A stretch of 64,000 bases of DNA from Rhodosorus marinus CCMP1338 (Eukaryota; Plantae; Rhodophyta). Below are positions 481-54,659 of the stretch, one piece after another. Under the pieces are notes generated by a model. The model saw only the letters and a program-made list of their open reading frames with translations, had not been told where the DNA came from and did no database searches. The stretch covers positions 1 through 64,000 of the forward strand of contig JAMWBK010000010.1 in assembly GCA_029953675.1 (NCBI GenBank). The letters are read 5' to 3'. The position numbers and the translations under genes were made by a program. Within the stretch, counting starts at the first letter, position 1. Each line of letters begins with the position of its first letter.

Positions 481-840
481 TACCCCAGACTAACGTAACC
501 CCAGACTAACATAGCCCCAGACTAACGTAACACCAGACTGCATGGCCCCAGACTAACGCGCCCCAGACTAGCATGACCCCAGCGCGGCCTGACTGCTAAT
601 GACTTGGTGGCATAACCCCAGACTAACGTAACCCCAGACTAACGTAACCCCAGACTAACGTAACCCCAGACTAACGTAACCCCAGACTAACGTAACCCCA
701 GACTAACGTAACCCCAGACTAACGTAACCCCAGACTAACGTAACCCCAGACTAACGTAACCCCAGACTAACGTAACCCCAGACTAACGTAACCCCAGACT
801 AACGTAACCCCAGACTAACGTAACCCCAGACTAACGTAAC
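481..840 (-). repeat. Same telomere repeat in the opposite orientation, (CCCCAGACTAACGTAA)n; expected polarity for a left chromosome end
   Basis: Degenerate 510-612, perfect units ~613-840, directly abutting the 3' end of a family T element. Confidence 0.9.
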
Positions 841-1110
841 CGTGAGCTTTATTGGGCAGTCGCCTAATGCGACGTAACACTAAGCCGATTGCTATCTAGG
901 GAATCACTCACAACAACCCCGCTACCGGGGTCTCATGCTACGTTCAAAAGAAAAAACAGGAACCAGTGGGTTCTCCAACTGGTCCGCACGTAGAGCGCCA
1001 AGCGCAATCGCCGCGTTCCCCTGCCATAGGATCCTGTTTAACTGGGATCGTGCATCCCTCAGCTCCTCATCTCGATGCAACAAGTGTTTACAACTGTCCC
1101 GCAAAAAGTC
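841..1110 (-). mobile_element. Family T non-LTR retrotransposon, short 5'-truncated copy (C-terminus of ORF2 plus 3' UTR) inserted in telomere repeats
   Basis: Encodes DFLRDSCKHLLHR...FERSMRPR*, matching the end of ORF 48848-51040. 3' UTR ends ...CCCAATAAAGCTCACG|GGTTACGTTAG. Telomere repeats on both sides. Confidence 0.9.
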
Positions 1111-1133
1111 ACCCCAGACTAACGTAACCCCAG
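1111..1133 (-). repeat. Interstitial telomere seed (about 1.4 units)
   Basis: accccagactaacgtaaccccag, a perfect match to the terminal repeat, lying between two T fragments. Confidence 0.9.
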
Positions 1134-3295
1134 TGGCCTGTAGGCTCCGAGCTGCATCTGAAAGGCGGCCAAGGTGTGCTAGTTTCAGCGCTCGCTTGTG
1201 GCGCCCGAGATGTTTGCGTCGAACCGCTTCAGCTCCTTGCGGTGCGGTAGTACGCGACAGCATAGACGCCTTGTCCTCTAGAGCGCTCCAGACCGTAGAG
1301 AATTCTCCTTCAAGCACATGCGATACCTGAATGCCAACATCAAGTGCAGAGTGTCCGAGGACAAGGCCTGGAAGTCCGACAAGAAGCAGACTGGCGTTTG
1401 CTGGTGCGGTGCTGTCCATAGAGAGCTCTAATGCAGCACGGAAGAGGCAGCTCCATGTGTGAACCTGGGCGCGTGGCACAAATCGCCGTGTGGGAACCGG
1501 GCAGTGTGTAAGGCGCGTCCACTGCCTGCCTCCTTGCGTGACGTCGTCGACGAAGACGCTCCACCGCCTGATCCAGTCTTGGCGATCCGAGAAGAAAAGA
1601 GGCTCTTCGCGGCGTCGTTTGATTCCCCTACGTCTGCTCGGCATTATTGCGCTGGGTTTTCCTGGCTCTCCTGCGTGTCCATCGCGTGATGGTTGCCGTC
1701 AACGGCAACCTGTGTCCCAGTGGTATCCTGTGGAGTCTCCACGGCTGCCGGAGTCATCTCAGTATCCGGTCCGGTGCCATCGGCGGCCACTCGCGAGCGC
1801 TTCTGTTGAGGTGGCTCCGGAAGGTTGCAGAGGAGCTCCGCATGGGGATTGTCTTCGTGTGCTGCGTTCTCAGGTACTTGGGAAGTCGCACTGGTCTCAA
1901 CCGAGGCGTCAACTCTCCCACGGTCTGCCTGTACATCCCCTGGAAGGGACGAGGCTTCAGGGTCTGCGTTCGTGGCGGCTGCAGGCGCTGGGGGTTCCGC
2001 GCTCTCCCCGGGTACCGTTGGAGTACGTTGTGTGGCTTGTAGGGATCCGAGTCTGCTCTCCAGGTACTCGTGTATCGCTGCGAGTGTGTTGAACGAGAGT
2101 TGCCTTCTGCGGAGTCTCGCGCGGATCCGGATAGTCTGTTCAATCGCCCGTTTCAGGGTCTGAGCCCCGATATTCGCTGGGGCAATGAGCTGACGTTCAT
2201 TGTAGCCCAACAGGTTGTCTGTATCCAGTGCCTGGCCCGTGTAGAGAGTCACTTGCCGATCAGGGGTGTCTCTGGGTGAACGAACCGAAGATGCCCGTCC
2301 TGAAAACGCCCCGAGAGATGGCGCTTTGTAGAATCGGAATCGCGTCCGGATGGCAGAGTAAGCACGCATGGGAAGCGATGAAGTCCACGTGCGCCACATA
2401 AGAGCTCGGAATCCCCAAGGCTCTGCAAAGGACCGTGGTGAAATCCGATGGGGCTACCTCGTCCATCCGTGGCGGTCTTACATTCCTCAGGGTCGCCAGT
2501 ACCGGCTTGGTCTCAGGTCCCCAGGAGGACCCTCCCACAGTGGCGTGCAACTGTCGTAGCGCTGCCTGCTGGCTCTGTGGGCCCGGGCGCCCGGCTGGTC
2601 GGAGTTGAGCCTCTGATTCTCGAGCTGGAGTACTTTGGGCAGTCCTCTGAGCGTACGTTGGCCGTGTGCTGCTGATACCGGCAACCGGGAAGGCCGTGGC
2701 ATAGTCCAGTGGGGCAAGGACACCTGTCCCCTCCGCAAGTTGATTGATGATGGGTTCTGCCGCATGTTGATTGACCGCCGCCGTCCGCGGGTGCTGCTGC
2801 GGGGGTTGAGGCGGGGTCGTAGTGGCTCGTCCGTCTTGCCACATATGCGGTTTTGGCGAGCTCATTCAGACGTCCTGTCACTGATTGAAGTTCTTTTGAG
2901 CAGTTGATGCGGGAATAGAGGTTGAAGGCGGCCTGGTAGAAGTCGGCGATGTCCGACTGGCCGATTCCCAGGGCGGTATAGCAGTGGTCGTAGCTCTGCA
3001 GTTGGTGGAGAAAGGCGACAGCTGGGTCTGCTGTGGCCTGCTCCGCGGCACCCTGTTCTGCATTCCTCTCTGCCTCCTGTTCTGCTCCCCTATACTGGTG
3101 CTGTTGCTGCTGCTGCTGCTGCTGCTCTTGTAGCAGCTCTTTCGCCCTCTCCATTTCGCGGGTACCCGAGGTGTGTGGGCCCGCGATCACAAGAGGCTCG
3201 GGGTACGGCCCGCGTACCTCCTTCACAATCATACTTGTAACTTTTTATCACCTTTTTCCGTCGTTTTCCACAAACAAAGCCGTCCAAACCAGAGA
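1134..3295 (-). mobile_element. Family T element, 5' half (5' UTR, ORF1, start of ORF2), broken and capped by telomere repeats
   Basis: 1134-1700 is nearly identical to 51470-52058. The 5' end abuts degenerate telomere units at 3296-3327. Confidence 0.85.
1644..3232 (-). pseudogene. Family T ORF1 (polyQ/helical N-terminus, conserved NVRP domain, low-complexity C-terminus), split by two frameshifts
   Basis: Overlapping ORFs 2513-3232, 2260-2865 and 1644-2399. The RNVRPP...SDF...LG...VDF segment aligns by eye with the ORF1s of families A and C and with T2. Confidence 0.7.
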
Positions 3296-3327
3296 GTAAC
3301 CCCCAGACTCAAGTAACCCCAGACTAA
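3296..3327 (-). repeat. Degenerate interstitial telomere repeats at the 5' junction of the T element
   Basis: gtaacccccagactcaagtaaccccagactaa. Confidence 0.8.
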
Positions 3328-3336
3328 GTTGAAAGA

Positions 3337-7147: not shown

Positions 7148-7157
7148 AGGCTGTACT

Positions 7158-22330: not shown

Positions 22331-22714
22331 AAGGCAGCGAGAGGATGCGCTTGAAACGAGGAACACTCTCGGACCCGAACACGACTCCATTCTCAACCGA
22401 AAACCGACGGACAGCAAAAGCCTGATAGATATAGAGTTTAGTCTCCTCTCAGAGGAAGCAAAAATCCAGCCGACAGTCAACTTTCGATGTAGATATGAAA
22501 AACATCCATCCTATGAAACCTCGAGCAGATAAGAAGTTCTCAGTCTTTCGTGGTGCTAAGCTCAATTAACTGATAGAACGGAGAGAATCCTCAATTGAAG
22601 TTTCTAAGACGGCTGCGTCACAGCCGCCATGTTGCAACCCCTTTTCCACCTCTGGCTGTGGATTGAGTGAAAAGGTCGGAGAATCAGCCAAACGCTTCGA
22701 CCCGATCCTAACTG

Positions 22715-32519: not shown

Positions 32520-32529
32520 GTGTATACCC

Positions 32530-32547
32530 AGGGTTACGTTAGTCTGG
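32530..32547 (+). repeat. Interstitial telomere seed, G-rich on + (inverted relative to the chromosome end)
   Basis: gggttacgttagtctgg, a 17-nt perfect match. Confidence 0.8.
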
Positions 32548-32586
32548 CGCCAGCCCCGGGGCCGGCAGGCCGCGATACCCAATCAT

Positions 32587-34950: not shown

Positions 34951-34974
34951 GTCACCGCGGCTTCGTTTCCAGAA

Positions 34975-37900: not shown

Positions 37901-38920
37901 CGTGGCCGTTGTTGCAGTGACCACGAAAAGAAGAACATCCCGGCCCTCGTAGTTCGCAAAAAGGAAGTCGTCTCGGACACGGCCCCAAGGACTCCGCGAA
38001 AGTATTCCGGAAATCACGCATGGATGGGACCTGGCCCCGTGTAGTCTAAAGCCGAACGTTTCGCACCCGAAGGAATTGCAAAGTAGTCGCATCAGGTCCG
38101 CCCTGCTGCTCGCGAGAGGGCAAAACTTTTTGCATAGCCGCCGTACGGGCGGCTGTGGTACCCTTCCGTAAAACCGAGGCGTACGACACGCCCCCCTTAG
38201 GGCCACCACGTGTCCCCGCCTTGTCCTGGAGCTGTCCCCCACCTGAGGGCTGGCCCAGCATAGGAAAGTCCGCTCCCGTTGAGGGGACGTGCAAAGGAGT
38301 AGAGCTAGCTGCACCCCTCCCCGAAGAGGCGCCACTCGAGGGACCACCAACAGCGGGCTCAGCAGCCCGCCCCTGTTCGGGGACAGTCGCAGAGTGACTG
38401 ACCCCTTGATTTTGACTGCCTCGCGGCCGCGTAGCCACCGTGGCCACCGTGTCAGATTTTAGAGCAAGCGCCAGGAGGCTGGATTCCAGCAAACCAAGGC
38501 GTTGGGTCAGCTGCGGCAGGACGCCCTTATCCCCCGCGGCGGTGGTTAGACTGGTGACGGCTGGCATTAGGGCTCGCATCTCCATACCAGTGGCGCCCTG
38601 CAGCTCCACCTGCGTAGAGAAAAGGCCCGAACTTAGACACACCCGGTGCCCAACCCCCAAGGACGCCTCGTTGCCAAGGAGCTCCGCTCCCGAGGGAGCA
38701 GGGCGCGAGGGTACCCCTACCATCATGAGAGAATTTAGTGACGATACTTTAACCACCAATTCCCCCGCCGAAAAAGCACACCACCCAACTCCACAGGAGA
38801 AAAATCCCCGTCGCGACCCAACACCAGAAGGTGAATGACCCGACTACCAACCACAAAACCCGAAAAAACGGGGGGAAAGCCGGCAGAGAGAAGCGACTTG
38901 ACACGCAAAACTACCAAAAA
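34975..38920 (-). mobile_element. Degenerate family A copy with 5' UTR, ORF1 and broken ORF2
   Basis: ORF1 N-terminus 38046-38759, RT motifs 35600-37300, A-poor 5' leader 38730-38915. Confidence 0.82.
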
Positions 38921-38974
38921 ATTGGTTTTTACTAGCTTAGGGCAATGTTAGTAAACCAGTTCCAGCTTTTCATT

Positions 38975-39900
38975 GGCCTTATTAGCATAGCCTAAAGCGC
39001 TACGCAAAGCGTGAAAAGGAACTAAGAACTAGGTAGGGAAGCGTCCAAACCCAGGCGCCGATGGCGCACCTCGACAAGCACGCTGCTCGAATATCGCCAC
39101 AGAGAGACACGTAAACGCCGCAAAAGTTCCAAGTATTCAACAGGATGCTCAGTGAAACATTTCCGCAACCACTCCAAACCCGACTTCTCCACGTGACCAA
39201 AAGTTTCCACACTGAAAGGCTGGAACCGGTGGGAGCGACCCTCAGCGCGAGGCAGATTGGCCATACTCTCAGCATACCGTCGTTCCTTCACTCGGCGAAG
39301 GGCCGAAGCAGCTGCTCCCCGGCGGCGTGCGGCAGCCGGGAGATGGGCGCTTGCCACAGGGCATGTAATCGCGAGGTCAACATATGCTGAGCGCCTGGCG
39401 GCAGCATCGGAGACGAGGAGATCTGCGATATAGCGGGGCGGTGCCCTATTCGAGACCGATCTGGGCAGTTCCGAATCCACCTCAACCGTATGCCCTACCC
39501 GAGTCAAACATTTGCTGAGAATGTACTTATAGCGAGTGTGACGCCTCGTAAGAAGACCTCTCAACAGTCCGCAGGAACCTAAGAAATAATAACCACAAGC
39601 ATCGATCCGAATCTCACATCCCTGACAGAAAGGCGGTCCATTAGAGTGCCGCGGAGCTTGTGGCAAACACAGGTAAATCCGTGCGGCAGAGCGAAACTGG
39701 CAGGCATCGAGACGGTGACCCAGTGAGGACGGCAGGGTCGTTCAACCACAAATGTGATAGATGGTCTCCCATGCCGCGGAGGCGAGCGGCGGTGGTAGGC
39801 GGTGTGAGGGGAGAGTTGAGCAAGATTGCGTGAGCAATCTTGCTGCACTGTGTTGGCCCCCAGGTGAGGCTACGTTGAACCACATCAGTGCGCGAGGCAG
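38975..39900 (-). mobile_element. Family A 3' fragment (RLE plus UTR)
   Basis: ORF 39022-39666 with RLE motifs. Confidence 0.85.
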
Positions 39901-39904
39901 CTCC

Positions 39905-42900
39905 ACAGTTTTTACTGGCTTTATTGGACTTTACTAGCATAGCCTGAAGCGCTACGCAAGGCGTGAAGATGAACTAATAACTAGGGAGGGAAGCATGCAA
40001 CCCCAGGCGCCGATGGCGCGCCTCGGAAAGCATGTCGCTGGAATATCGCCAAAGGGAGACACTTAAACGCCTCAAGAGCGCCAAATATTCAGTAGGATGC
40101 TCAGCAAAACATTTCCGCAACCACTCTAAACCCGACTTATCCACGTGACCAAAGCTTTCCACAATGAATGGCTGGAACCGGTGATAGCGACCCTCAGCGC
40201 AAGGCAGACTGGCCATGTTCTCAGCATACCGTCGTTCCTTAACTCTTCGAAGGGCTGAAGCCGCGGCCCCCCGGCGGCGGGCGGCTGCGGTGAGGTGGGG
40301 GCTGGCCACGGGGCAGGTAATCGCAGGGTCCACATATGTTGAGCGTCTGGCAGCAGCGTCGGAGACGAGGAGATCGGCTATACAACGGGGCGGTGCAGAG
40401 TCCGAGATTGATCTGGGCAGTTCCGACTCAACCTCAACCGTATGCCCTATCCGAGTCAAAAATTCGCTGAGGATGTACTTGAGGCGAGTGTGACGCCTCG
40501 TACGGAGACCTCTCAACAGTCCGCAGGAACCCAGGAAATGGTAGCCACAAGCGTCAATCCGGCTCTCACATCCCTGACAGAAAGACGGCCGATTAGAGTG
40601 CCACGGAGCCTGTGGCAAACCGAGATAGATCCGTGCGGCAGAACGGAACTGGAAAGCATCGAGACGATGACTCAATGACGACGGTAGAGTGGTTAACCAC
40701 AAGTGCGAGAGGTGGCCTCCCATGCCGCGGAGACGAGCGGCAGTGGTAGGCGGCGTGAGAGGAGAATTGAGCATGACTGTGTGAGCGGCACTGTGTTGGC
40801 CCCAGGTGAGGCTATGTTGAATCACATCAGTGCGGGAGCTCCACAATCGGCTCAAACCCGGGTAGTCTGCGATAGGTGACCCGGGGCTGGCCTCTCCGTC
40901 ATCGGCAAGAACTCGGTCGAGGGGAGAATCCTCAATCGATTCAGCTCGTCCCCATAACAGCTCCTTCCAGGAACGAAAGCGGGACCGATTTGCGTCCGGC
41001 AAGGCGTTGCACCTCCTGAACGCGTGTTGAAGACCATCATAAATTGTCAAAAGCGGGGTGGCAGGGTCACTGGATCCTCGTTGGTCAAAGCTCAAGCCAA
41101 GAGGCTTGCACTTCGCATCTGGAAGGTCACCAACGTTCGCAGCGCGGTAGCCCAGGAGGCAACCGCCGCTGGCGAGCATACCAGCCCACGGTCTGCGACG
41201 CCGAATCCCCCTAATCGCAACGGTAGAGCGATCTGTGCACGAATCAAGTCCCTGTCGGGAGCAGCTTCAAGATCGAGGGGCTCATCCAAGAGCGTTCCCC
41301 AGTGTTGCAGGGTCATCTCGTCGGCTTTAGCCGCGAACCACGAGCCCCAAGCTGGAGGCAGGCTGCGCAACCAGTAGTTGAGTCTGGGACCGGCACAAAA
41401 GCGGGAAAGCAAACAGGCCGATTGCAGCATTCTGTCGGGTAGGTGCTCAATGGCGTCGGTGAGTTGCTTGTGCCGTGCCAAAACTCGCTCGCAGGATGCT
41501 TGGACAAACTTGTCAGTCCCCAATCCGACGCCGTAGTGTTCGAACCCTTCACGTTCGCTGATTAGTCGCAGAGTGGGTGGCAGAGAGGCCAGCGACACGT
41601 CCCTCGGGGGGAGAAAGCGACATTTTTCCGTCTCCACAGTCAAACCGACGCGACGTGCAATCGCTTCGATCTCGGTCAGCCCCCTAGCCAGGGTGTCAGG
41701 GGTGCCCAGCAATGTTACGTCATCGTGGTACGCGCAGATTCGAAGATCCGAGACCTCAGTCGAAAGACGTAAAAGTACGAGCTGTAGGGCACAGGCATGA
41801 AGAAGAGGTCCGCAAGGGTCGCCTTGTTGGACGCCAGTATGTGCTTGAAAAACAGTGCCCTCCGTTGTCAAGTAGGGGAGGCTCTCCCCTCCGTAAACAC
41901 CCGATAGAAACGGCCACGCCTCCGGAAACACCCGTCGGAGCACCTCTAGCGCATGCGTCCGCGACACGCTGTTGAATGCGTTCCGGAAATCAACCACCAA
42001 GACTCCCCACTCCGGCCTACTGGCGCGTTCTAGCTCGATCCCATGGGTGATCAGTTCGCAAACCCCCGAAAATCCCACCCCTACTTGCAAGGGCGCCATA
42101 AAAGCTGTGACTCGCTGGCGAAGGCGCTGGCATAGCCACCTCCCGGCTAACTTCCGTAGGCTCTCCACCATCCCGATCGGCCGAGACGCGGGTGGGCCGG
42201 CTGGTCGTCAGGTTTCGTGAGCAAGCAAAGCTGTGCCTGCCGGAGATGTTCCCATGGCGCAGACGCACCCGATACGCCCTGGAACAACTTGCTAAGGATC
42301 CTCAGAAGCGCGCTCTGGCCAGGCTGGCTCAGGGCCTGCAATAGCTCTGTTCTTAGTCCGGAGGGTCCGGGACAGCGTCCCCGACGCGAGGTACGAAGCA
42401 AATCCTCCAGGTCAGACTCACTGAGCGTCAGATCGATGCGAAACCTGGCCAACTCCGGACGGTCCAAGAATACCTCGAATTCAGGGGACAAGTCCACGTC
42501 GGACTCGGGGAAAGCTGCGCTGTAGTACTTCGAAGTCTCCCTTCAAGAACAGGGCCAGTCGGTCTCGTACTCGCCATCTGCGCTCCGATGTGTGAATGGG
42601 GGCCAGAATCAGGCGCGGCATGACCCCCAGAAAAACCCAAATGACTGTGTCCCGAATGTTGCGAGCCAGGCTCGTGAAGATGAAATCGAGAATGGTTCCA
42701 GCTACTAGAAGGTCTCCACGAGGGAGGACGACTGGGGGAATGCCCCCACGGAGGGGAAGCGAGCCTCCTTCCAAAGAAATCCACCGCCGGAGCCAACTCC
42801 GAAAACGCGTACGCCAAATGCCCCAGTCTCCGCCCTCCTTCAGGACATAGCACTGTAGATCCATAGGATGCGACCTCGCAGCCGTGCCTGGAGCGCTAAT

Positions 42901-44560
42901 CGTGCTTCTCCCCCTTAGACCCGGGGGAGTCGGTCCTCGCTCTCTTACCTCCTATCCGCACCAAAGTCGTGAGCCGCCCACTCCGCGAGGCTCGCGGAAC
43001 GGATCCCGCGGGCTTCAGCAAAGTAACCTGGGCGTCCTCCACCGCCATGCCCTCAGTCTGCTTCCCTGCCTCACCACTCTCGCTGGAAGTGGTGCTGGAA
43101 GCAGAGCCCTCCAAAATCCCCAACCGCTGCAGCTCTGTCTTGTAGCGCGAAGTCAGCACAAGTCGCCTCTCCAGATCGAAGAAGCTGGACACCGCCATGC
43201 GCAGGTGACGAGGGCCCGACCGGAACCGCTCCAACAAGATCCTCTCAAGGCGCTGAATCCGTAGCCAATGGATCGCTGCCGCCTTCACGCTGCTCTCATG
43301 CTCAGAGAGCCCTGCCGTTTCTCCCGGAGACAGGAAATTGCCCGAGAAACGGTCAAAATCCAAGTGCAAAACCACCTGCGGGTTGCAGCGCAGCCACCGG
43401 GCGCTCTCAGGCCACTGCTCGGTAGGCTTCGCCAGCAAGGCCTCCAGGTACTTGGCGGCGGTTGCGGAGACCAAAAACAGCACATCGCGGCCCTCATAGT
43501 TTGCGAAGAAGAAATCACCCCGGCTGCACCCTAACGATTCCGCAAAAGTGTCCCGGAAGTCTCGCATAGACGGAACCTGGCCTCGTGTAGTCTGGGGCCG
43601 GACATTTCGCCCCCACAGAAATTGGAGAGTGGTCTCCACAGGTCCATCCTGAGGCTCGCGAGATGGTAGGAAACGGAGCATAGCCGCCGGACGTGTGGCA
43701 GTGGTGCCCTTCCGCAAGACTGAGGCGTACGAAGCCCCCCCCTTGCGGCCACCACGTGCCCCCGCAGTAGCCCGGAGCTGGTGACCACCTGAGGGCTGGT
43801 CGAAGAGAGGGAAGTCCACAGCTGCAGTCTCCTCCACACCGGTTGCCGCACAGTCACCACCACCATTGCCTCGAGTCCCCGAGCGCTGAAGCGCGTTTTG
43901 GCCCGGCCTGCCGCTCCCCAACGTCGTGCTGTCCCGCGCAGAAGCAACCGCCCTCGCCTGTCCCGGGACAGGTTCATGTTGATTGACCTGATGTTGACTG
44001 CCTTCAGCCAACGCTGCCACTCTGGGGCAATTCAAATTCTCGTCCGAATTTGAATTTGACCTGGCCAGCAATCCCGATTCCAGCCCACCTAGCTTCTGGG
44101 TGAGCTGAGGGAGCACTCCACGATCACTCGCAGCCGTGATCAGGCTGGCGACAGCGGAGATAAGTGCACGCGCCTGGGTGCCAGAAGCGCCTTCCAAGTC
44201 AACCTCGGAAGAAAACGTGCCGCAGCTGAGGCGAACACGGAGTCCCCCACCTGGCAGTGCCTCCTTGGGAGGAGGCTCCGTCGAGCGCGGAGATATCCCT
44301 ACCATCCTGAGGGAATGCGCAAAGGAAACGTTGCACCACCAATGTGAAACCGCACCGAGACAATAATCGACCAAACCCAACCCAAATAGGAAAGGCCCCG
44401 CAACACACCCACCCGGAAGACAGAAGTAGTTGCAAATGCAAACGACGCACCGCGGAAAATCGAGGGGAAGGCGTACCAGAGGAAGCGCTTCCCGTAAACG
44501 AACACGCTCGCGACCGAAAAAGAAACAAAACCCCAATCCTCAGCCAGACCACAATACTCT
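39905..44560 (-). mobile_element. Longest family A (A1) copy: 5' UTR, intact ORF1, ORF2 with an internal deletion near 42510 and a TGA at 41092
   Basis: Nearly identical by eye to 12877-16335 over the shared length. Tail AGTAAAGTCC-AATAAAGCC-AGTAAAAA at 39910-39937. Confidence 0.9.
42896..44305 (-). CDS. Family A ORF1 (469 aa), candidate RNA-binding/chaperone protein
   Basis: First ATG (MVGISPRSTEP) at 44305. SYASVLRKG then FLWGRNVRPQTT..RDFRDTFAESLG. The basic C-terminus ends 31 nt before the ORF2 ATG. Confidence 0.8.
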   Translation of the reverse strand: MVGISPRSTEPPPKEALPGGGLRVRLSCGTFSSEVDLEGASGTQARALISAVASLITAASDRGVLPQLTQKLGGLESGLLARSNSNSDENLNCPRVAALAEGSQHQVNQHEPVPGQARAVASARDSTTLGSGRPGQNALQRSGTRGNGGGDCAATGVEETAAVDFPLFDQPSGGHQLRATAGARGGRKGGASYASVLRKGTTATRPAAMLRFLPSREPQDGPVETTLQFLWGRNVRPQTTRGQVPSMRDFRDTFAESLGCSRGDFFFANYEGRDVLFLVSATAAKYLEALLAKPTEQWPESARWLRCNPQVVLHLDFDRFSGNFLSPGETAGLSEHESSVKAAAIHWLRIQRLERILLERFRSGPRHLRMAVSSFFDLERRLVLTSRYKTELQRLGILEGSASSTTSSESGEAGKQTEGMAVEDAQVTLLKPAGSVPRASRSGRLTTLVRIGGKRARTDSPGSKGEKHD

Positions 44561-45020
44561 AGCGCTGAAAGTAAAACTGAAGTGCTAGGATGGCATTTGT
44601 ATCAGCAACTCTGACAAAGTCCTCCTGGTGAGGGAGTCGCTTCGATTGTACACGTTTGCTAACACTCCTCAAAGTGACGCCCTTTGTTTAGGATTCTCAG
44701 CTTGGCTCGGTCTGTTGAATTTCGTCGTTTCTAGCGCCTTCTTGAGTATATCCGTGACTTGCTCCTGGGTTGGGATGAATAGGAACTCGTGGCTTCTAGG
44801 TCGTGTCGCTGTCGTGAAAATTGGTACTGAAATTCAATATGCTTAGGCAGCGGCTTTTCCAGGTCTATGCTCCAGGTGAGAGGCAGTGTTGTCTGAGAAG
44901 ACCACATCGATCTCCGCCAGTAAGTTCTTCACCCACTGTACTTTCTGAAGTCCGTACGTCAGGGCAATATATTCTGCTTGGCTTGATGAAGTCGCGATGA
45001 TTTTCTGCTTCTTGCTAATG

Positions 45021-46718
45021 TACGTGAAGTTTCGATGGGCTCTCTGCCACATAGTCTCCGAGTCTTTGGTGAACGCGAGGGGCTCGAGCACCATGGCATC
45101 GGTTTGGCGAGTGACAACTTCGTCCAAGACTCTTGCGAACGAGTTGTAGCACGCCACAAGCAGCTCACCGACGCCATTGAGCGCCTACCGGACAGCTTGC
45201 AACAATCGGCATGCCTGCTTTCCCGCTTTTGGCCGGCCCCCGCCTGAATTACCGGCTGCGAAGCCTTCCACCATATTGGGGCTCGTGGATGGCAGCAAAG
45301 GCGGACGAGGCGATGCTGAAGCACTGGGGAACGCTCTTGGATGAACCCCTGGATGTGGAAGCAGCTCCTGACAGGGATCTAATTCGTGCCCAGATTTCCC
45401 TACCGTTGCGATTAGGTGGATTTGGAGTGGCCGACCGTGGACTCGTTTGCTCGCCCGCGGCGGTCGCCTCCTGGGCTACCGCGCTTCACACCTTGGTGAG
45501 TTTTCGGATGCGAAGTACCTGCCTTTTGGCTAGAGCACTGACTGGCGAAGATCTCGTGGCCCTTACGCCACCGCTTTTGAGTATCTATGATGCTCTGCAA
45601 CAGGCGTTCAGTAAGTGCAACGCCGTGCCAGACGAGAGCCGATCCCGATTTCGCTCCTGGAAGGAGCTATTATGGGGACGAACTGAGGCGCTCGCGGACT
45701 CTCCCATCGACAGAGTACTCGCGACGAGGGGGAAGCTAGCCCCGGGTCACCGGTTGCCGACTGCCCGGGTCTTAACCGATTGTGGAGCTCGCGCACTGAT
45801 ATGGTTCAACATAGCCTCACCTGGGGCCAACACTGTGCCGCTCACCCAATCTTGCTCAACTCTCCCCTCACACCACCTACCACCGCCGCTCGCCTCCGAG
45901 GCATGGGAGGCAGCCAGTCGCACTTGTGGTTAACCACGCTGCCTTCGTCACTGGGTCACCGTCTCGATGCCTTTCAGTTCCGCTGTTCGGCACGGGTCTA
46001 CCTGGGTTTGCCACAAGCTCCGTGGCACTCTAGTTGGCCGTCTTTCTGTCACGGATGTGAGAGTCGGATCGATGCTTGTGGTTACCACTTCTTAGGTTTA
46101 TGTGGACTGATGAAAAGTCTTCGTACGAGGCGTCACACTCCTTCAAGTACATTCTCAGCGAATGTTTGACTCAGGTAGGGCACACGGTTGGGGTGGAATC
46201 GGAACTGCCCAGATCGGTACGGCACCGCCCCGCTGTATCGCAGATCTCCTTGTCTCCGATGCTGCCGCCAAACGCTCAGCACATGTTGACCTCGCGATTA
46301 CATGCCCTGTGGCAAGCGCCCATCTCACGGCTGCCGCCCGCCGCCTGGGAGCAGCTGCTTCGGCCCTTCGCCGAGTGAAGGAACGATGGTATGCTGAGAG
46401 TATGGCCAGTCTACCTCGCGCTGAGGGTCGCTCCCACCGGTTCCAGCCTTTCATTGTGGAAAGCTCTGGTCACGTGGAGAAGTCGGGTTTGGAGTGGTTG
46501 CGGAAATATTTTACTGAGTATCCTGTTGAATACCTGGAACTTTCGCGGCGTTTAAGTGTCTCTCTGTGGCGATATTCGAGCAGCATGCTTGCCGAGGCGC
46601 GCCATCGGCGCCTGGGTTTGCACACTTCCCTACCTAGTTCTTAGTTCCTTTTCACGCTTTGCGTAGCGCTTTAGGCTATGCTAATAAAACCACTCTAGTA
46701 AAGCCCAATAAAACCACC
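45021..46718 (+). mobile_element. Family A (A2) 5'-truncated copy inserted in copia RNase H
   Basis: Splits GNPISF|ISKKQKII. TSD aatg (45017-45020, 46719-46722). Tail AATAAAACC. Confidence 0.88.
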
Positions 46719-48767
46719 AATGAAGGAGATCGGGTTTCCGTACAGGTATGCGTCAGCGCCGGTTACGGATTTTCGGTCCTTTGGTAAAACCCATGACGCG
46801 TCTACGTAGCGTGTGATCTCCTCGTGTTCTTGACAAGGAGAGAAAACTAGTGATGCGTTGATTGTGCCGCGTAAGCACACCTTAGTATTCGCTTACCGGC
46901 TGACCAGTCGTCATTATTGAAACGTTACGCCTTTGTGGCTAGTAGTCTAACCGCGTACGTTATGTCTGGTCTGGTTCTTGTGGAGATGTATAGTAGGGCC
47001 CCGATGAGTTCACGGTAAAGGTACTCTTCTTGTCTTCCGGACTTATCCGTTGGTATGTAATCCTTGGTCATCGGCGTTGGCACCGGTTTGCTCTCGTGCA
47101 TTCTGAATTCCTTGAGTATTTTCTAGATGTGCTTCTTCTGCCCCAAGGAGATGGTTGATGCGTTTGGGTCTCTCCCGATTTCTATGCAGAGGTATTCTCT
47201 CGCTGCGCCGAGGTCTTTCAGATCGTACATAGTGTGTAGCTGCTTCTTAACTTTTGCCACCCGCTGCCTGCTTCCGATGATTAGGAAGTCGTCGACATAT
47301 GCGAGTAGGTAGACGCCTTCCTTTACGAACACACACGGGTCTGCAGTTGTTGCCTTAAAGCTATGACCTTGTAGGTCTTTCCTTAGCTTCTCGTACCATA
47401 TTTTTCCTGATTGCTTTACAACATAGAGACCCCTGTTTAGCTTGCAGAGCTTACCCTTGTCTTGTGGGCCCGGGGGTCTCTCCATGTATATCTCCTCATC
47501 GAGTTCACCATTGAGGTAGGCCGTCGATACGCTGAACGTCGAGTTACGTTGCGCTGCCAATGATAGCAGCACTCTGATGCTGTCGAAACTGACCGTCGGT
47601 GAGTAGACTTCTGTAAAATCTTGCCGCTGGAAACCTCTTGCGACCACTCGAGCTTTGAATTTCAGCGGCTCCCCGCCTTGGTTCCGTTTCAGTTTGAAGA
47701 ACGAATTTGTTGCTTAACAATTGCTTGTCCTTTGGTCTCTCCACCAGTGAACAGGTCTCGTACTTGCTCATACTTTCGAGCTCGTCCGCGATTGCTTCCT
47801 CCCAATACTTCGCGTGGGGTCCGGCGAGCTTCCTCGATGGTTTGAGGTTCCTCGATTATCGTTAAGCTGCTCAACTTGGGTTTCGCTATCGCGCCTGACC
47901 TTGTTTGTCGCGGTAAGTTTGTGACTTCTTTGACTTCTTTCGCTGTTAGCTCGTTATTTTCACGTTCTTCGGTGTTGTTGTCAGGTTTCACGTCTTCATT
48001 GTCAGGTCTGTGGTGGGTTTTGTGAACTGGTGTTTCTAGTTTGTCTTCGAGGCTCGATGGCTCCTGATTCCGACTGATGTAGTCTTTAGCTTTGACGTAG
48101 TCGATGGCTTCTTGAATGTCTGGTGTAAGTGCGGCTTGGGGTCTCTTCAGAGTGAAGGGTTCCTCCTGCACTACGATGTCTTTCGTCCATCGTTTGCGAC
48201 CATCTCCGACTTGGATGAGGTGCTTGCCGCTTCGCTCACAGCGGAGTACAATCCCACACATCGTTGGTACGTCGAGCTTGTCGCGTCATATGGTACCATC
48301 TTCTTTTGGTGCGTGCGCGATCGCTAGGCAGCCGAACGGGTACATATTTTTGAAGTCGTCTTGCTTGCCGGTGAGTATTTCCCAGGGGCTTTTGTTGTTC
48401 TTTCGTCTTGGTCTTCCGTTCAGTATCCTTTCGATAATTTGTAGGGTCTCCGTCCAGGAGCTTTTCTCTATGCCTGGCTGGTACAAGAATACCCGCATGA
48501 GCATTAGGCTGCTCGGATTGGCTCGCTCCGAGATCCCGTTCGTTTCCGCGCTGTGTGGCGGGTCGTGTCCAGCGTGACCCCTGGCTTCTTGAGTTTTTCT
48601 TGCATGCCAGTGTATTCGCCTCCCGGTCGGAGTGGACGGTAATTATTCTTTGACCCGATAAACGCGAAGGACGGGTAAAAACTCGAAAGACGCCATATAT
48701 TCATCGAATGCCTAAGAGACGTCGGGTATGTTTTGTACATCTCGATACTTCGTCCGTAAAGGTAACC

Positions 48768-51700
48768 GTAAGCTTTACTGGGCAGCTGCCTACTGCAGCG
48801 CAACACTACGTCTAATCCTATCTAGGGAGAAACTTACTGGAACCCCGCTACCGGGGTCTCATGCTACGTTCAAAAGAAAAAACAGGCACCAGCGGATTCT
48901 CCAGCTGGTCCACGCGCAAAGCGCCTAATGCTATCTCCGCGTTACCTCGCCATAGTTGCCGGTTTATCTGGGATCTCACGTCTCTCAGCTCCTCACTCCT
49001 GTGCAGTAGGTGTTTGCAGCTGTCGCGGAGGAACTCTTGTGCCATTTGCCCCGTACGCCCAAATGTCTCTATCGCTATCGGGATGAACTTATCATCCGGT
49101 TTCTCGATCACCATCGCTTCTTTGTAGTGAGCGATTTTCCACTTCTCCGCAGCTCTCGCCGCGTATCCGCTATCATCTTGGCTCCTCCGCAAATATTTTC
49201 CCTGTAATGGTGACACCACCGTCACATCCAGCGCATACCTTTGTTTGGTCCTCGGATGCCTAGCAACGATATCAGGTCGCAGTCCGTAGTTCTCGAAGTA
49301 CCCCTCAGGTTCTTGCTCTACGTCCATGAAGTTCCATCGCCTTAGCCATCGTGCCAGCTCTCTGCAGATTTCGTCATGCCTACGTTGCCACAGTCCAGTT
49401 GATGTTGGGCAGTGATGAAACCGTTGTACCCCAGTCCTTCCGTGTTTACTCCGGCAACTAGTGCACTTCTCGGTGGTCCGCAATCCCGGAATTGGCAGAC
49501 CCAGCAGTTGTCGAACGTTTACCTGCATCTCAACCGCACTCAATTTTTTCGGTGTCAGCGTTGGTATTTCATGTAGCCAGACTCCCGACCCGGATCCCGC
49601 GGCAGACCGTATTCGAGCTCGGTTTTCAGGGGAGATTCGTGGGTTGGTGACCAGCTTTTGGAATGCACAATGGTGTGCCTCTCGAGAGAAGGTTTGTTGT
49701 ATTGAACCATTATTACAAGCTGCAGTCTCGCCCGGGGCGCTTCGAAGAGGTGTTTCGCGTGGTTGTTGCAGGGTAGTCAGTGCCAAGATCCGCGGCGGGG
49801 TTTCTGGTCCGAGCCTCCGTTGTATTGCTCGCGACGATGCACAGATCTGGTCCGCCAGCTGTGCAGTCGACCATCGTTGATCCATCGGCTCGTATGTGTC
49901 TGGTGAGCGTTCTGCCGTAACCTCCCGCTCTAGTTCAGTCAGGTATGGCCATTCATCTTCATTGTTCCGGAAGGTGTTTCTCCATGACGAGTAAAACGCG
50001 ATGGGTTGGACGCGCTTTCGAGTAGCGAAACCCAAACCTCCCCAGCGGCAGGGCAGAGCGATTTGGTCCGAGATCAGCTCTGCGTACTCATCGTCCTCTA
50101 CAGCTGTCGTAGCGAGGCCTCCGAATAGAATTTCCAGGTGATATCTGGTCATCACGTCGGCCTCGCGTGCCAGATTTCTTCCAAACTCGTATGCGAGGCA
50201 TCGTAGCACATAGTCTAGTCGCGTTTCTGCACAGAACCTGAAGAGGGCAATTTGCGTCGTAAGCTCCGGTTGCGGGAGCTTGGCAATTTCCTCAAAGAGT
50301 TTCTCATGCTTATTTTGCAACCCCCGGCACTCCTGTTCGATATATTCTCGGCTGCCTATCGGTATCGAGTGGATGGTGACTCCGTCTCTGGTCACTTGCA
50401 CTCCAGGAATCTCATGGTTGACCACTCGCGTGGTAGTCAGTGTTCGCCCGTACACAGTGCACTTGCCGAGTTGCAGGCGTGCTCCAAGAGAGGGGAGCAC
50501 AGTTTTTGCCCATGCCAGGGACGCCTTCACGGCTTGTAGCGACCCGACAATCGTGATATCGTCGTGGATAGCAACAATCGTTTCGTTGGGGAACTTGGCT
50601 CGCAACGCTCTTAGAAAGGGCGCCAGGGATAGTGCATGTAGCACCGGCCCCAGTGGATCTCCCTGTTGGACTCCTGTAGTTGCTTGGAGAGTCAGGCGGG
50701 AGGTGTCGGTTTCGTTCTGTCCAGGGGAAGATCGCCAGCCACAGAGCGTCGGTGAGTCCGCGTTGTCGCTTCCATAGCCAAGTCTATACACTGGTGCAAG
50801 TTCCGGCAAGTGTTCGTCCACCAGTTGCTTGGCAAGGCGTCGGTCGATGCGATTAAAGGCATTCTCAAGGTCTAAGCGAAGGACCACCGAATCGGGTTCG
50901 CATGACAAATGGGCCTGGATCGCGTGAAGCGAGCGTTCGCACCCGCCACTTACTCCGATACCCAGTTGTAAGGGCACCAGGAGCTCACGCACCCTGTCCA
51001 TAACCGCGTGAAGAGTCCATTGCGTTGCTACCTTGCGCAAAACTTCTGGTACTCCGATAGGCGAACTCCGGGATGCTCCTGCGGCACTGAACCCTTGTTA
51101 GGCTTCGTGAACGGCAGGAGTCGACTACTGCGAAGGGCGCGGGTCAGAGCCGGGGAAAATTTCTCAGGAGCGGTCGCCAGTTGTCGCAATACACGAATCA
51201 ACGCCACTTGCGTCTGTTGGGTTGCACCTTGGAGGTGTTCCGCTCGGAGACCGCTAGGACCTGGGCTCTTGCCCTGAGGAAGACGTGCCACGATCGACAT
51301 GAGGCCCTCGTCGGCCGCTTTTTTTGAATCCCACCCCCGCTTTAGTGTTTCGGTATTCAGAGCGAGCAAAGATTGCAGTGCGTGTGCAATCTCGTCTGGT
51401 AAGTCACCTTCCGCCGGGTTGGGAAAGAGCGTAGTTGTCTCCACGTAGCCGCGGTAAAAGGTGCCATTTCGGTGGCCTGTAGGCTCCGAGCTGCATCTGA
51501 AAGGCGGCCAAGGTGTGCTAGTTTCAGCGCTCGCTTGTGGCGCCCGAGATGTTTGCGTCGAGCCGCTTAAGCTCCTTGCGGTGCGGTAGTATACCATTCA
51601 TTCAGTATGCGACAGCATAGACGCCTTGTCCTCTAGAGCGCTCCAGACCGTAGAGAATTCTCCTTCAAGCACATGCGATACCTGAATGCCAACATCAAGT

Positions 51701-52058
51701 GCAGAGTGTCCAAGGACAAGGCCTGGAAGTCCGACAAAGAGCAGGTTGGCGTTTGCTGGTGCGGTGCTGTCCATAGAGAGCTCTATGGCAGCACGGAAGA
51801 GGCAGCTCCATGTGTGAACCTGGGCGCGTGGCACAAATCGCCGTGTGGGAACCGGGCAGTGTGTAAGGCGCGTCCACTGCCTGCCTCCTTCCGTGACGTC
51901 GTCGACGAAGACGCTCCACCGCCTGATCCAGTCTTGACGATCCGAGAAGAATAGAGGCTCTTCGCGGCGTCGTTTGATTCCCCTACGTCTGCTCGGCATT
52001 ATTGCGCTGGGTGTTCCTGGCTCTCCTGCGTGTCCATCGCGTGATGGTTGCCGTCAAC
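48768..52058 (-). mobile_element. Family T element (5'-truncated in ORF1, complete ORF2 span) inserted in copia integrase at a telomere-like site
   Basis: Splits AEYWVT|FTDEVSR. TSD ggtaacc (48761-48767, 52059-52065). Confidence 0.92.
48848..51040 (-). CDS. Family T ORF2 core: RT, zinc finger and restriction-like endonuclease (upstream part frameshifted)
   Basis: LRLDLENAFNRIDR, GVQQGDPLGP, AIHDD, LPCRWGGLG, CTSC...HC, RRHDEI, RPDI..LDV..KIAHY..PIAIETFG. Confidence 0.88.
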   Translation of the reverse strand: MRKVATQWTLHAVMDRVRELLVPLQLGIGVSGGCERSLHAIQAHLSCEPDSVVLRLDLENAFNRIDRRLAKQLVDEHLPELAPVYRLGYGSDNADSPTLCGWRSSPGQNETDTSRLTLQATTGVQQGDPLGPVLHALSLAPFLRALRAKFPNETIVAIHDDITIVGSLQAVKASLAWAKTVLPSLGARLQLGKCTVYGRTLTTTRVVNHEIPGVQVTRDGVTIHSIPIGSREYIEQECRGLQNKHEKLFEEIAKLPQPELTTQIALFRFCAETRLDYVLRCLAYEFGRNLAREADVMTRYHLEILFGGLATTAVEDDEYAELISDQIALPCRWGGLGFATRKRVQPIAFYSSWRNTFRNNEDEWPYLTELEREVTAERSPDTYEPMDQRWSTAQLADQICASSRAIQRRLGPETPPRILALTTLQQPRETPLRSAPGETAACNNGSIQQTFSREAHHCAFQKLVTNPRISPENRARIRSAAGSGSGVWLHEIPTLTPKKLSAVEMQVNVRQLLGLPIPGLRTTEKCTSCRSKHGRTGVQRFHHCPTSTGLWQRRHDEICRELARWLRRWNFMDVEQEPEGYFENYGLRPDIVARHPRTKQRYALDVTVVSPLQGKYLRRSQDDSGYAARAAEKWKIAHYKEAMVIEKPDDKFIPIAIETFGRTGQMAQEFLRDSCKHLLHRSEELRDVRSQINRQLWRGNAEIALGALRVDQLENPLVPVFSFERSMRPR

Positions 52059-53134
52059 GGTAACCCAGTATTCTGCTCCTTTCGATTTGGACAGCTTTCC
52101 GCAGACGTCCGTGTGAATCGTCTCTCCAGGGCGACTCGCGTGTGCCAGTGTTCCTGCCCGGATTCCTCGTCTTAGTTTTGCTACCGTACATGTTTCACAG
52201 TCCGGGGTTGACGATGCCGGTTGGATCTGTTTCACTTTCTGCCAGTCCGTGTGACCTAGCTTTCGGTGTAGTTTGCTTAGGTCACGCATTGAGTTTAGTT
52301 GCTGACTTTTCGTTGTCCACGACGCCAGTATCTACGTGCTGTTTATCAGCTTTGCGCTTGCAACCACTGCCCCTCCTTTTTCGTAGAATTTACAACCTTT
52401 CCTATCGAAATTGACATTGTATCCTTTCTTCACAATGGCAGGCACAGGCACAGATAGGTAGTTTCCCTCGAGGCCAGGTAGGTATAAATCGTCCTCGATC
52501 GTTATTGGTTGTCGCTTATCGCCAACTGTCGTTGCGATGACCACTGTTCCTTTTTCATTTCCGCTGATCGTTCGTTGGTCTGGGAGAGTTACAGTATTGA
52601 TCTTAGATTCCTTGATTGTCGCGAACAAAATTCGTTGACCGAGCATGTGGGACGTTGCTCCGGAGTCGATGACTATGTCGTTTGGATTTGCGCTGAAGCC
52701 TAGTGCAAATAGGGTTTCTTTGTCCGGTTCCTTGTTGCGGCGTTGGAAATTCTTGCTCCGGCACTCCTTTTGGAAATGTCCATATCGGTTGCACTTCTGG
52801 TATTTGATGTGTGCCTTGCATTGTGCTGTTCTGTGGTTGTGCCTTCCACATTTTTCGCGCTTTCGACTTTTGCTTTTGAACTGCATGCGCATGATCGCGT
52901 GCTCGTTGGGTTTTGATGTTTGCGTTGGCCCTTGAACACCTCCCAGGCGGGCTCTCATGGTTTCCCAGTCGATTTTGGTCCTTCGAAATGTTCGTCAGGC
53001 CTTCGATGGTTGCATCGAGGACGCTTTCATCCTTCAGGATCAGGCATATGTGACCCAAACGGTGTATGGCTTTGTACTCTGTTGTATCGAGTTTAAATAC
53101 TTTAGAGTAGTATTCTTCGAGCCATGTGAGTAGC

Positions 53135-53884
53135 TTTCCAGTTCCGTTCTGCCGCACGGATCTATCTCGGTTTGCCACAGGCTCCGTGGCACTCTAATCG
53201 GCCGTCTTTCTGTCAGGGATGTGAGAGTCGGATTGACGCTTGTGGCTACCACTTCCTGGGTTCCTGCGGACTGTTGAGAGGTCTCCGTACGAGGCGTCAC
53301 ACTCGCCTCAAGTACATCCTCAGCGAATTTTTGACTCGGAAAGGGCATACGGTTGAGGTTGAGTCGGAACTGCCCAGATCAATCTCGGACTCTGCACCGC
53401 CCCGTTGTATAGCCGATCTCCTCGTCTCCGACGCTGCTGCCAGACGCTCAACATATGTGGACCCTGCGATTACCTGCCCCGTGGCCAGCCCCCACCTCAC
53501 CGCAGCCGCCCGCCGCCGGGGGGCCGCGGCTTCAGCCCTTCGAAGAGTTAAGGAACGACGGTATGCTGAGAACATGGCCAGTCTGCCTTGCGCTGAGGGT
53601 CGCTATCACCGGTTCCAGCCATTCATTGTGGAAAGCTTTGGTCACGTGGATAAGTCGGGTTTAGAGTGGTTGCGGAAATGTTTTGCTGAGCATCCTACTG
53701 AATATTTGGCGCTCTTGAGGCGTTTAAGTGTCTCCCTTTGGCGATATTCCAGCGACATGCTTTCCGAGGCGCGCCATCGGCGCCTGGGGTTGCGTGCTTC
53801 CCTCCCTAGTTATTAGTTCATCTTCACGCCTTGCGTAGCGCTTTAGGCTATGCTAGTAAAGTCTAGTAAAGTCCAGTAAAGTCC
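53135..53884 (+). mobile_element. Family A (A1) 5'-truncated copy inserted in copia gag
   Basis: Splits TTLGLL|TWLEEYY. TSD agtagc (53129-53134, 53885-53890). Tail (AGTAAAGTCC)3. Confidence 0.9.
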
Positions 53885-54625
53885 AGTAGCCCTAGCGTCG
53901 TCTCATCCGGTTTCAGTCTCCTTGTGGGCGATTCCACTTGCCTCTTGATTTGTGCCGCTATTGTTTTCGTGACATATTTCTTTTGCAGTTTGTTCATAAG
54001 TTCTGTTGCATCGGTTGTCTGTTCCGCTATCAACATCGCTTCGTTGAGTTTTACAAGCGACGTAGCTTGGAGTCTTTTGCCGATGTTTTCCTCTTGCCCA
54101 AAAACGGCGTCGTGTAGTCCAGCCAGCTTGAGTCTTTCGATAATGCTGGATTTCCAGTAGTTATAGTCGTCAGGACCTTCCAACTTCGGGCATCTAAGGA
54201 AACATCCCACGGCGTCCATCCTTTTGCACCAAATCAAACCACCTTTCTCCTTGTCCTTTCTCTTTTTCTTTTTTTTAACGTAAAACTGGCTCATACGCTG
54301 TTGACAAAGTAGGCGTTTTGTGTTGGGTGAAGGGGGGGTGTTGATTTCATGAATCGCACATTGAGGGGAGCGCGGCAGACCACGAATAACAGTGAGGGAA
54401 GCTTGGACGATTAGAAACCGGTGGGGAAGCAGTTCTGCGGAGGTGGTGAAGCAGATGACAAGGGATCCACAGGGTAGAAGAGCTACTTGAGCTCGACTCG
54501 AACTTGGGAGCATTCCCCAGGTTGCGGGATAATTAAGTTTCTTGAAGGAAGTGGGATGATGGTTCCTTTCGCAAGAGCATTGGAAGGGAGGAAGGAGAGT
54601 CATGAAATGGAAGCGGGGGCAGTAA

Positions 54626-54659
54626 GGGGTTACGTTACCCCAGACTAACGTAACCCCAG
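54626..54659. repeat. Interstitial inverted telomere junction
   Basis: ggggttacgtta-ccccagac-taacgtaaccccag. Confidence 0.8.

Follow-up and report, generated by a model that had tools for sequence, protein, structure and literature searches.

An R2-like retrotransposon family associated with telomeres of the red alga Rhodosorus marinus and its insertion at a partial telomere mimic within a copia integrase

Long interspersed nuclear elements (LINEs) that encode a restriction-like endonuclease (RLE) and target telomeres are known from fungi (MoTeR, FoTeR and Cnl1) and from Giardia (GilM and GilT) (PMC7367193, PMC12857005), and for SART1 and TRAS1, LINEs with an endonuclease of the apurinic/apyrimidinic (APE) type, both sequence-specific cleavage of telomeric DNA and mapping of the minimal target have been reported (PMC7265360, PMC2868851), with SART1 requiring at least three TTAGG units (PMC7265360). 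Elements inserted in a telomere array hide their own target-site duplication (TSD), so that the TSDs of FoTeR inside telomeres could not be defined (PMC12857005). Here we analyze an RLE LINE family, denoted T, in a stretch of 64,000 nucleotides from Rhodosorus marinus CCMP1338 (GCA_029953675.1, contig JAMWBK010000010.1, positions 1 to 64,000; hereafter, the window), where one T copy lies in the integrase of a Ty1/copia element, ~48-52 kb away from the telomere, and, unlike FoTeR, supplies a TSD. The interpretation that we favor, with a probability of about 0.72, is that T uses target-primed reverse transcription (TPRT) to insert into the 16-bp telomere unit, and that the copia copy arose off target, as a rare event, at a sequence that mimics this unit in part.

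In architecture and context, family T resembles MoTeR1 and MoTeR2 of Magnaporthe oryzae, FoTeR of Fusarium oxysporum and Cnl1 of Cryptococcus, non-LTR (long terminal repeat) retrotransposons of the CRE-like group, all of which combine a reverse transcriptase (RT) with an RLE, form head-to-tail arrays in telomere repeats with short interstitial telomere tracts (PMC7367193, PMC12857005), carry variant telomere-like repeats at the 5' end, and include truncated copies capped with new telomere repeats. Unlike in MoTeR, where the 5' end is nearest the chromosome end (PMC7367193), it is the 3' end in T; furthermore, T resides in a red alga whose telomere unit has 16 bp, in contrast to the TTAGGG of the MoTeR/FoTeR/Cnl1 group. 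Compared by description, GilM and GilT (Genie) of Giardia are likewise telomere-associated RLE LINEs of a protist, although the telomere unit differs (PMC12857005). With TRAS1 and SART1 of Bombyx mori, T shares insertion at one nucleotide position of the telomere repeat, which these elements achieve by sequence-specific cleavage, but TRAS1 and SART1 belong to the R1 clade and have an APE-type endonuclease and poly(A), whereas T has an RLE and lacks poly(A). The features in common with R2 are a CCHC motif with a PD-(D/E)XK endonuclease, the lack of poly(A), a precise 3' junction and a variable 5' junction, and a 3' untranslated region (UTR) with a conserved terminus. Unlike R2, T targets the telomere unit rather than 28S rDNA and has two open reading frames (ORFs) with a TAATG stop/start overlap, and no N-terminal zinc-finger/Myb domain was detected by Pfam in its frameshifted copies.

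Family T and its place at chromosome ends

The 730-amino-acid (aa) ORF of T at 48848-51040 (minus strand) matches the Pfam domain RVT_1 (E=1.3e-7). When T, the related family Y and six homologues from databases were combined in one profile, R2 proteins were matched over the stretch that begins with the RT and includes the CCHC/RLE region (9nl3, E=6.5e-41); L1 RTs were matched as well. The alignment with R2 spans residues ~985-1142 and includes C..C, H..C, RH, PD, DVTV and K, with C526, C544, R554, H555, D605 and K635 invariant across the profile members; downstream of the RT, the C-terminal region of T consists of the CCHC motif and a PD-(D/E)XK restriction-like endonuclease. No APE endonuclease was found among the N-terminal pieces of ORF2, which had no Pfam match other than RVT_1; self-comparison revealed no terminal direct repeats (long terminal repeats, LTRs) around T; and the 3' end is joined straight to the target, with no A-run. 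Judged by this domain content, T is an R2-like RLE non-LTR retrotransposon of Rhodosorus. ORF2 starts with MPSRRRG... at 51999, and in a longer copy, this start overlaps the ORF1 stop (TAATG).

Relatives of T are transcribed, as attested by an 840-aa ORF in MMETSP. Compared to this expressed relative (66-81% identity), the T copy in copia (hereafter, internal T) shifts frame at least three times in the first third of ORF2 and, as assembled, is dead. The nearest genomic relatives of T are in R. marinus (71-79% protein identity). Exact matching to contigs gave none for the protein P0003 or for the 730-aa ORF of the window, but succeeded for the longer isoform P0027. The last ~27 nucleotides (nt) of the 3' UTR, TAGGC(A/G)(G/A)CTGCCCA(G/A)TAAAGCTYAC, are kept across T-like families down to 46% protein identity and, given this conservation, are probably an element recognized by the RT. 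The string GGTTACG also occurs inside T itself, in the RT-RLE linker region (49916-49922, minus strand), where it is a potential self-target.

The telomere unit, GGGGTTACGTTAGTCT, is unusually long (16 bp). A literature search with this 16-mer, in all rotations and on both strands, returned only chance primer matches, and the R. marinus genome paper, which mentions telomeres, gives no repeat sequence and no retrotransposons. The C-strand is on the plus strand at 482-841, as expected of a left chromosome end, and the unit there is identical to that at 20869-20924 of L041, a region of R. marinus contig 7 (GCA_029953675.1) at a distance of 2-24 kb from its right end. Read along the minus strand towards the end of the window, the order is the 3' end of a copy of another LINE family, X, variant telomere units (3329-3295), the 5' part of a T copy (3294-1134), 1.5 telomere units (1133-1108), a divergent 3' fragment of T (1107-842) and, finally, the telomere. 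L041 shares this telomere unit and contains a 3' fragment of T followed by a single telomere unit and a 5'-truncated T copy on the plus strand, which is interrupted further along by a full-length X (~11550); further out, there are an X healed with telomere units, variant units and another T-like element. Overall, T is embedded in telomere repeats with interstitial tracts at 842-3329 of the window and at 8624-8745 and 20869-21445 of L041, with variant telomere-like repeats on the 5' side at 3295-3329 and at L041 20900-20940, respectively. The 3' end of T is distal at both ends, the left end in the window (minus strand) and the right end in L041 (plus strand). Because this end faces the chromosome end, the sense strand of T is continuous with the telomeric G-strand, so that first-strand synthesis would have to be primed from a nick in the C-strand.

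The T copy broken within ORF2 (at 1134) and capped at 1108-1133 resembles an eroded end that was healed by telomere addition and then received a new T insertion; the family X copy at L041 20871 is likewise broken and healed with telomere units. The very start of the window (1-841) is palindromic, with the G-strand on the plus strand at 1-481 and the C-strand at 482-841, where units at ~482-620 are degenerate. The inversion of 1-481 is either a long-read fold-back assembly artefact, which is the probable case, or a real inverted terminal duplication.

The insertion in the copia integrase

Internal T is a 5'-truncated, minus-strand insert of 3,291 bp (48768-52058; Table 1) bordered by GGTAACC on the plus strand (GGTTACC on the element strand) at 48761-48767 and 52059-52065, in agreement with the limits, 48761-52065, that had been assigned to the insertion in an earlier reading of the window from its letters alone (hereafter, the sequence-only reading). 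The plus strand across the insert is ...CGTCCGTAAA GGTAACC / GTAAGCTTTACTGGGCAGCTGCC ... GGTTGCCGTCAAC / GGTAACC CAGTATTCTGC... (slashes between strings mark junctions). On the minus strand, the 5' junction is GAATACTG GGTTACC / GTTGACGGCAACC... and the 3' junction is ...CCCAGTAAAGCTTAC / GGTTACC TTTACGGACG, so the site in copia is ACTG/GGTTACC/TTT, with the 7-bp duplication on both sides.

Joining the flanks with one TSD copy yields ...GGAGCAGAATACTGGGTTACCTTTACGGACGAAG..., which translates to ...IHTDVCGKLSKSKGAEYWVTFTDEVSR..., and removal of T reopens the integrase frame (...HTDVCGKLSKSKGAEYWVTFTDEV...; ...LHRKLGHTDWQKVKQIQPASSTPDCETCTVAKLRRGIRAGTLAHASRPGETIHTDVCGKLSKSKGAEYWVTFTDEVSR...). 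The restoration of copia AEYWVTFTDEV by excising the insert together with one 7-bp TSD copy, claimed in the sequence-only reading, is apparent from this translation. The site lies between Pol_BBD and RVT_2, the usual location of the copia integrase, and the host fits Ty1/copia in its RVT_2 domain, its integrase (rve) upstream of the RT and its Pol beta-barrel/protease region. By itself, the 110-aa integrase fragment had no Pfam match. A search with the restored integrase segment retrieved a single protein, R. marinus NDN08_005937 (P0028), which is 64% identical, contains Pfam rve and Pol_BBD domains, and includes AEYWVTFTDEV (GKLPKSKGAEYWVTFTDEVSR). The DNA that encodes this protein, here L042 (contig 8 of GCA_029953675.1), shows 92-94% nucleotide identity to the copia of the window. 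This copia is uninterrupted, and GGTTACC occurs there once, in the empty site GAATACTGGGTTACCTTTAC that had been predicted; the L042 site, GGAGCAGAATACTGGGTTACCTTTACAGACGAAG, equals the reconstruction save for one downstream single-nucleotide polymorphism. The string CTGGGTTAC, which the sequence-only reading expected at this position in uninterrupted copia copies, is present in L042.

The 5' end of internal T was compared to the longer terminal copy, which is 95% identical and, at the matching point (1704/1703), reads ...ACACAGGTTGCC/GTTGACGGCAACC, where internal T reads ...ACTGGGTTACC/GTTGACGGCAACC. The earlier observation that truncation falls at an element GGTTGCC, a near match to the target, is confirmed by this comparison. 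Given that GGTTGCC/G differs from GGTTACC/G by one base only, the final CC of the upstream 7-mer could be derived from the element, and the true length of the duplication may be 5-7 bp. About 7 of 4,875 T positions (~1.4e-3; six found by scanning plus the real junction) are preceded by a 7-mer with at most one mismatch to the TSD, and by this count, GGTTGCC is unlikely to stand beside the truncation point by accident. A perfect 8-bp hairpin, GGTTGCCG-TTGA-CGGCAACC, is found at 1697-1716 (minus strand), exactly where internal T is truncated (local fold z = -2.85). Stalling of the RT at this hairpin was considered as the cause of truncation and set aside: internal T still has the loop and the 3' arm, plus a single base from the 5' arm, the T copy of R. 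marinus has no hairpin, and the exact breakpoint is better explained by microhomology.

Microhomology also raises the question of whether retrotransposition occurred at all, as opposed to the repair of a break in copia by microhomology-mediated, synthesis-dependent copying from a telomeric T or free T cDNA, via GGTTAC at the T/telomere junction and GGTTGCC inside T. Both junctions have microhomology to telomeric T (6 nt at the 3' junction, 6 of 7 at the 5' junction), and the surrounding subtelomeric nest is rearranged, with breaks that were healed and telomere tracts that are inverted. Such repair, however, usually deletes target bases, whereas GGTTACC is found here on both sides; the insert stops exactly at the conserved 3' terminus of the family; and TPRT typically yields 5'-truncated copies with microhomology. 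Break repair without retrotransposition therefore seems very unlikely.

Target match and mode of insertion

We collected the 3' junctions by approximate matching to the conserved 3' terminus of T (Table 1). The two junctions in the window, the internal AAAGCTTAC/GGTTACCTTTACGG and the terminal AAAGCTCAC/GGTTACGTTAGTCTGG (842/841), have the same form, AAAGCT(T/C)AC/GGTTAC. The sequence-only reading correctly described them as mirroring each other, but its terminal string, AAAGCTCACG/GGTTACG, contained one G too many, and once corrected, the junctions are more alike than it stated. All four junctions of T proper, taken from the window and from R. marinus L041 and L042, show (G/A)GTT(A/G)C after the 3' end. 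With the nick as the point of alignment, the telomere sequence ...AGTCTGG/GGTTACGTTAG and the copia site, ...AATACTG/GGTTACCTTTA, share the ungapped core G/GGTTAC-N-TT. The copia site copies ~7-10 bases of the telomere repeat. The motif proposed earlier, CTGG(G)GTTAC, stands in part: GGGTTAC-N-TT is common to both sites without a gap, but the motif as given needs a 1-nt gap.

At L042 5756, GGTTGC... comes after the T 3' end. We weighed this junction as another internal insertion and rejected it because the sequence downstream is a 5'-truncated T-like element; most likely, on the sequence, it is an array junction with a telomere remnant of 2-4 nt and not an independent case. A metagenome-wide scan with the T 3' terminus CTGCCCARTAAAGCTYAC returned 39 loci, none with T homology or a downstream GGTTAC, that is, chance matches.

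A count over both strands of the non-telomeric part of the window (114,606 positions) found starts of GGTTAC at a frequency of 1.6e-4 and of GGGTTAC at 5.2e-5, so that random insertion would almost never produce GGTTAC in register. The possibility that T inserted at random, or that the locus is an assembly chimera, with a fortuitous GGTTAC match, draws on the fact that the event is single and on the inversion of 1-481 with respect to 482-841 at the window start, a probable fold-back artefact. Apart from the low chance of an in-register match (~1.6e-4), the precise TSD and the exact restoration of the L042 empty site are unlike a chimera, which makes coincidence or artefact extremely improbable.

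Given that T encodes an R2-type RLE and that the target matches the telomere unit at the joining point, sequence-directed insertion is the best reading. Under the TPRT interpretation, a T ribonucleoprotein would read a short core of the telomere unit, approximately GGGTTAC, perhaps together with the following N-TT, and nick the C-strand at 5'-GTAACC^C(C), whereupon the freed 3'-OH would prime cDNA synthesis at the last base of the T RNA. The G-strand would be cut 3-7 nt downstream, after GGTTACC at the copia site; this stagger is proposed because the 5' flanks of other copies end at GGTTAC (window 3295), GGTTACG(T) (L041 8634) or GGGGT (window 1108; L041 8744). In copia, the nicks would be symmetrical on the pseudo-palindrome GGT(T/A)ACC, each just 3' of it on its own strand. 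The cut 3' end of the top strand (...GGTTACC) would then anneal to the cDNA at GGTTGCC and prime the second strand, leading to 5' truncation ~1.59 kb from the full-length 5' end. The predicted symmetry of the nicks, in this single case, suits a restriction-like enzyme.

The claim of the sequence-only reading that specificity is encoded in the sequence rather than set by position at the chromosome end is, then, the best reading, but recognition by protein, base pairing and capture through microhomology are inseparable in it. If annealing alone accounted for the target, telomeric T RNA would read through into ...GGUUACG..., and a nick or break with a 3' end complementary to GGUUAC (here, ...GGTAACC-3') would prime at the last base of the element, with the endonuclease weakly specific or uninvolved. 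In this scheme, the 3' end of the primer would pair with precisely the six bases that the copia site has in common with the telomere. Moreover, L040, apparently a transcript contig, extends 69 nt beyond the conserved 3' terminus, so that read-through RNAs of relatives are plausible; to initiate accurately, R2 and SART1 make use of RNA sequence that is downstream or terminal. An influence of the SART1 3' tail on the start of reverse transcription (PMC7265360) is also counted in favor of annealing. A clean 5-7 bp duplication with symmetric nicks on GGT(T/A)ACC, however, speaks for a staggered cut made by an enzyme, the catalytic residues of the RLE are kept across the family, and in telomeric copies the 5' flanks stop close to this same GGTTAC(G), which together make annealing without protein specificity unlikely.

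Several observations weigh against TPRT directed by the telomere unit with an off-target event in copia. Without a 1-nt gap (CTG-GG vs CTGGGG), the match upstream of the nick is poor. A mimic at 20058 (GTCTGGGTTACG; 20047-20070, plus strand), which lies within a family X copy, fits the telomere unit better than the copia site and is unoccupied, and other empty mimics that are at least as good are present at 57967, at three sites in L042 and at the orthologous copia site of L042. A telomere mimic is permissive for insertion but not sufficient. In L040, from a 46%-identical relative, the same 3' terminus is followed by AGTCTCCCCC instead of GGTTAC; because this is a different family (46%) and its context is unclear, it was counted neither as support nor as refutation. 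The T 5' junctions are heterogeneous, and no zinc-finger or Myb DNA-binding domain was found by Pfam in ORF1 or in the N-terminal part of ORF2 of the frameshifted T copies. Finally, one unambiguous non-telomeric T insertion is known, and the suggestion that the locus is a natural experiment defining the minimal target was not borne out by this one clear internal case.

A bolder version of protein-directed TPRT, which we consider doubtful, is that the T RLE would cut as genuine restriction enzymes do, at a core that is pseudo-palindromic (GGT(T/A)ACC in copia and GGTTACG in the telomere), nicking each strand 3' of the same half-site to leave 7-nt 3' overhangs, such that ~7-10 bp of the 16-bp unit would suffice for integration genome-wide. 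If true, T would be the first telomere-targeted RLE retrotransposon with cleavage geometry and minimal site readable from a natural insertion.

Table 1. Features of the window and T 3' junctions, with positions in the window unless another sequence is named
Feature	Position	Strand	Remarks
Telomere array, unit GGGGTTACGTTAGTCT	482..841	-	G-strand on minus strand, towards window start
Terminal 5'-truncated T 3' fragment	842..1107 (266 bp)	-	divergent, 79% nucleotide identity; ...AAAGCTCAC/GGTTACGTTAGTCT
1.5 telomere units capping broken T	1108-1133	-
T copy, 5' part	1134..3294 (2.16 kb)	-	ORF1 and ORF2 start; 95% identity to internal T over 588 nt; broken at 1134; GGTTGCC/GTTGACGG at 1710-1697
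Two variant telomere-like units, TTAGTCTGGGGTTAC TTGAGTCTGGGGGTTAC	3295..3329	-	directly upstream of full-length T 5' end
Degenerate Ty1/copia host	46700..54603	-	outer limits approximate
copia RVT_2	47123-47647	-	Pfam
TSD copy beside T 3' end	48761..48767	-	GGTTACC on element strand
Internal T	48768..52058	-	last 59 nt of ORF1, entire ORF2, 3' UTR
Internal T, ORF2			RT, CCHC and RLE; at least 3 frame changes in first third
Internal T, 3' UTR			ends ...CCCAGTAAAGCTTAC, without poly(A)
TSD copy beside T 5' end	52059..52065	-	overlaps 6/7 microhomology with GGTTGCC
copia integrase	split at 48767/52059	-	between Pol_BBD and RVT_2
copia Pol_BBD	52332-52958	-	Pfam
Family X fragment within copia host	53133-53888
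copia gag-like ORF	53863-54603	-	part of host element
Conserved 3' UTR terminus	842-870, 48768-48796; L040 4090-4118; L041 8692-8720; L042 5728-5756
T 3' junction	842		CAC/GGTTACGTTAGTCT; telomere
T 3' junction	48768		TAC/GGTTACCTTTACGG; copia
T 3' junction	L041 8720		TAC/AGTTACGTTAGTCTGGGGT; interstitial telomere unit, next T after
T 3' junction	L042 5756		TAC/GGTTGCAGCC; 5'-truncated T-like element after; most likely array junction
3' junction of relative	L040		CAC/AGTCTCCCCC; transcript-like contig, 46% family
Family X	3350-7150, 12880-16300, 19388-24000, 34972-46712, 53133-53888	both	3' tail (AGTAAAGTCC)n
Family Y	28155-32582	-
Family Y	7215-8328	+	99%-identical inverted partial copy at 7215-8251

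Related elements and significance

Among the relatives of T is family X, an abundant RLE LINE with ~32% aa identity to T in the RT and 96% aa identity to R. marinus copies. A 5'-truncated X at 53133-53888 lies in the same copia as internal T, and L042 has the corresponding empty site, CTAGGGC/TACTCACATGG. This insertion, with its (AGTAAAGTCC)n tail at CTAGGGC/TACTCAC, rules out family X as a telomere-specific one. Family Y is a third related RLE LINE (29% aa identity to T and 36-44% to X) with a 768-aa ORF that covers RT and RLE.

Interstitial telomere tracts of 1.5 units that fold back were observed in the window at 54627-54659 (...GTCTGGGGTAACGTAACCCC...), upstream of copia gag, and a fold-back telomere tract is also present in R. 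marinus L041 at 21409-21445 (...GTCTGGGGTAACCCCAGAC...); by their arrangement, these tracts look like scars of hairpin or fold-back ends. In addition, a divergent T-like element (40-63% aa identity) at 32531-34974 (plus strand) is oriented opposite to the chromosome end, is cut off by X at 34976, and is preceded by one plus-strand telomere unit (32531-32548, GGGTTACGTTAGTCTGG). This arrangement implies an inversion or another rearrangement of a former telomeric array.

Telomere targeting encoded in the sequence is expected rather than new, being already established for TRAS1 and SART1, and because it is established for other LINEs, the general picture is unchanged. Together with the L042 empty site, the off-target copy indicates the position of the first nick for a telomere-targeted RLE element (C-strand, GTAACC^C), as well as the distance to the second nick (roughly 5-7 nt here) and the use of microhomology in 5' truncation. 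Family T is apparently the first telomere-specific LINE family from a red alga in the searchable literature, and the 16-bp telomere unit that the window shares with L041 is apparently new there as well.

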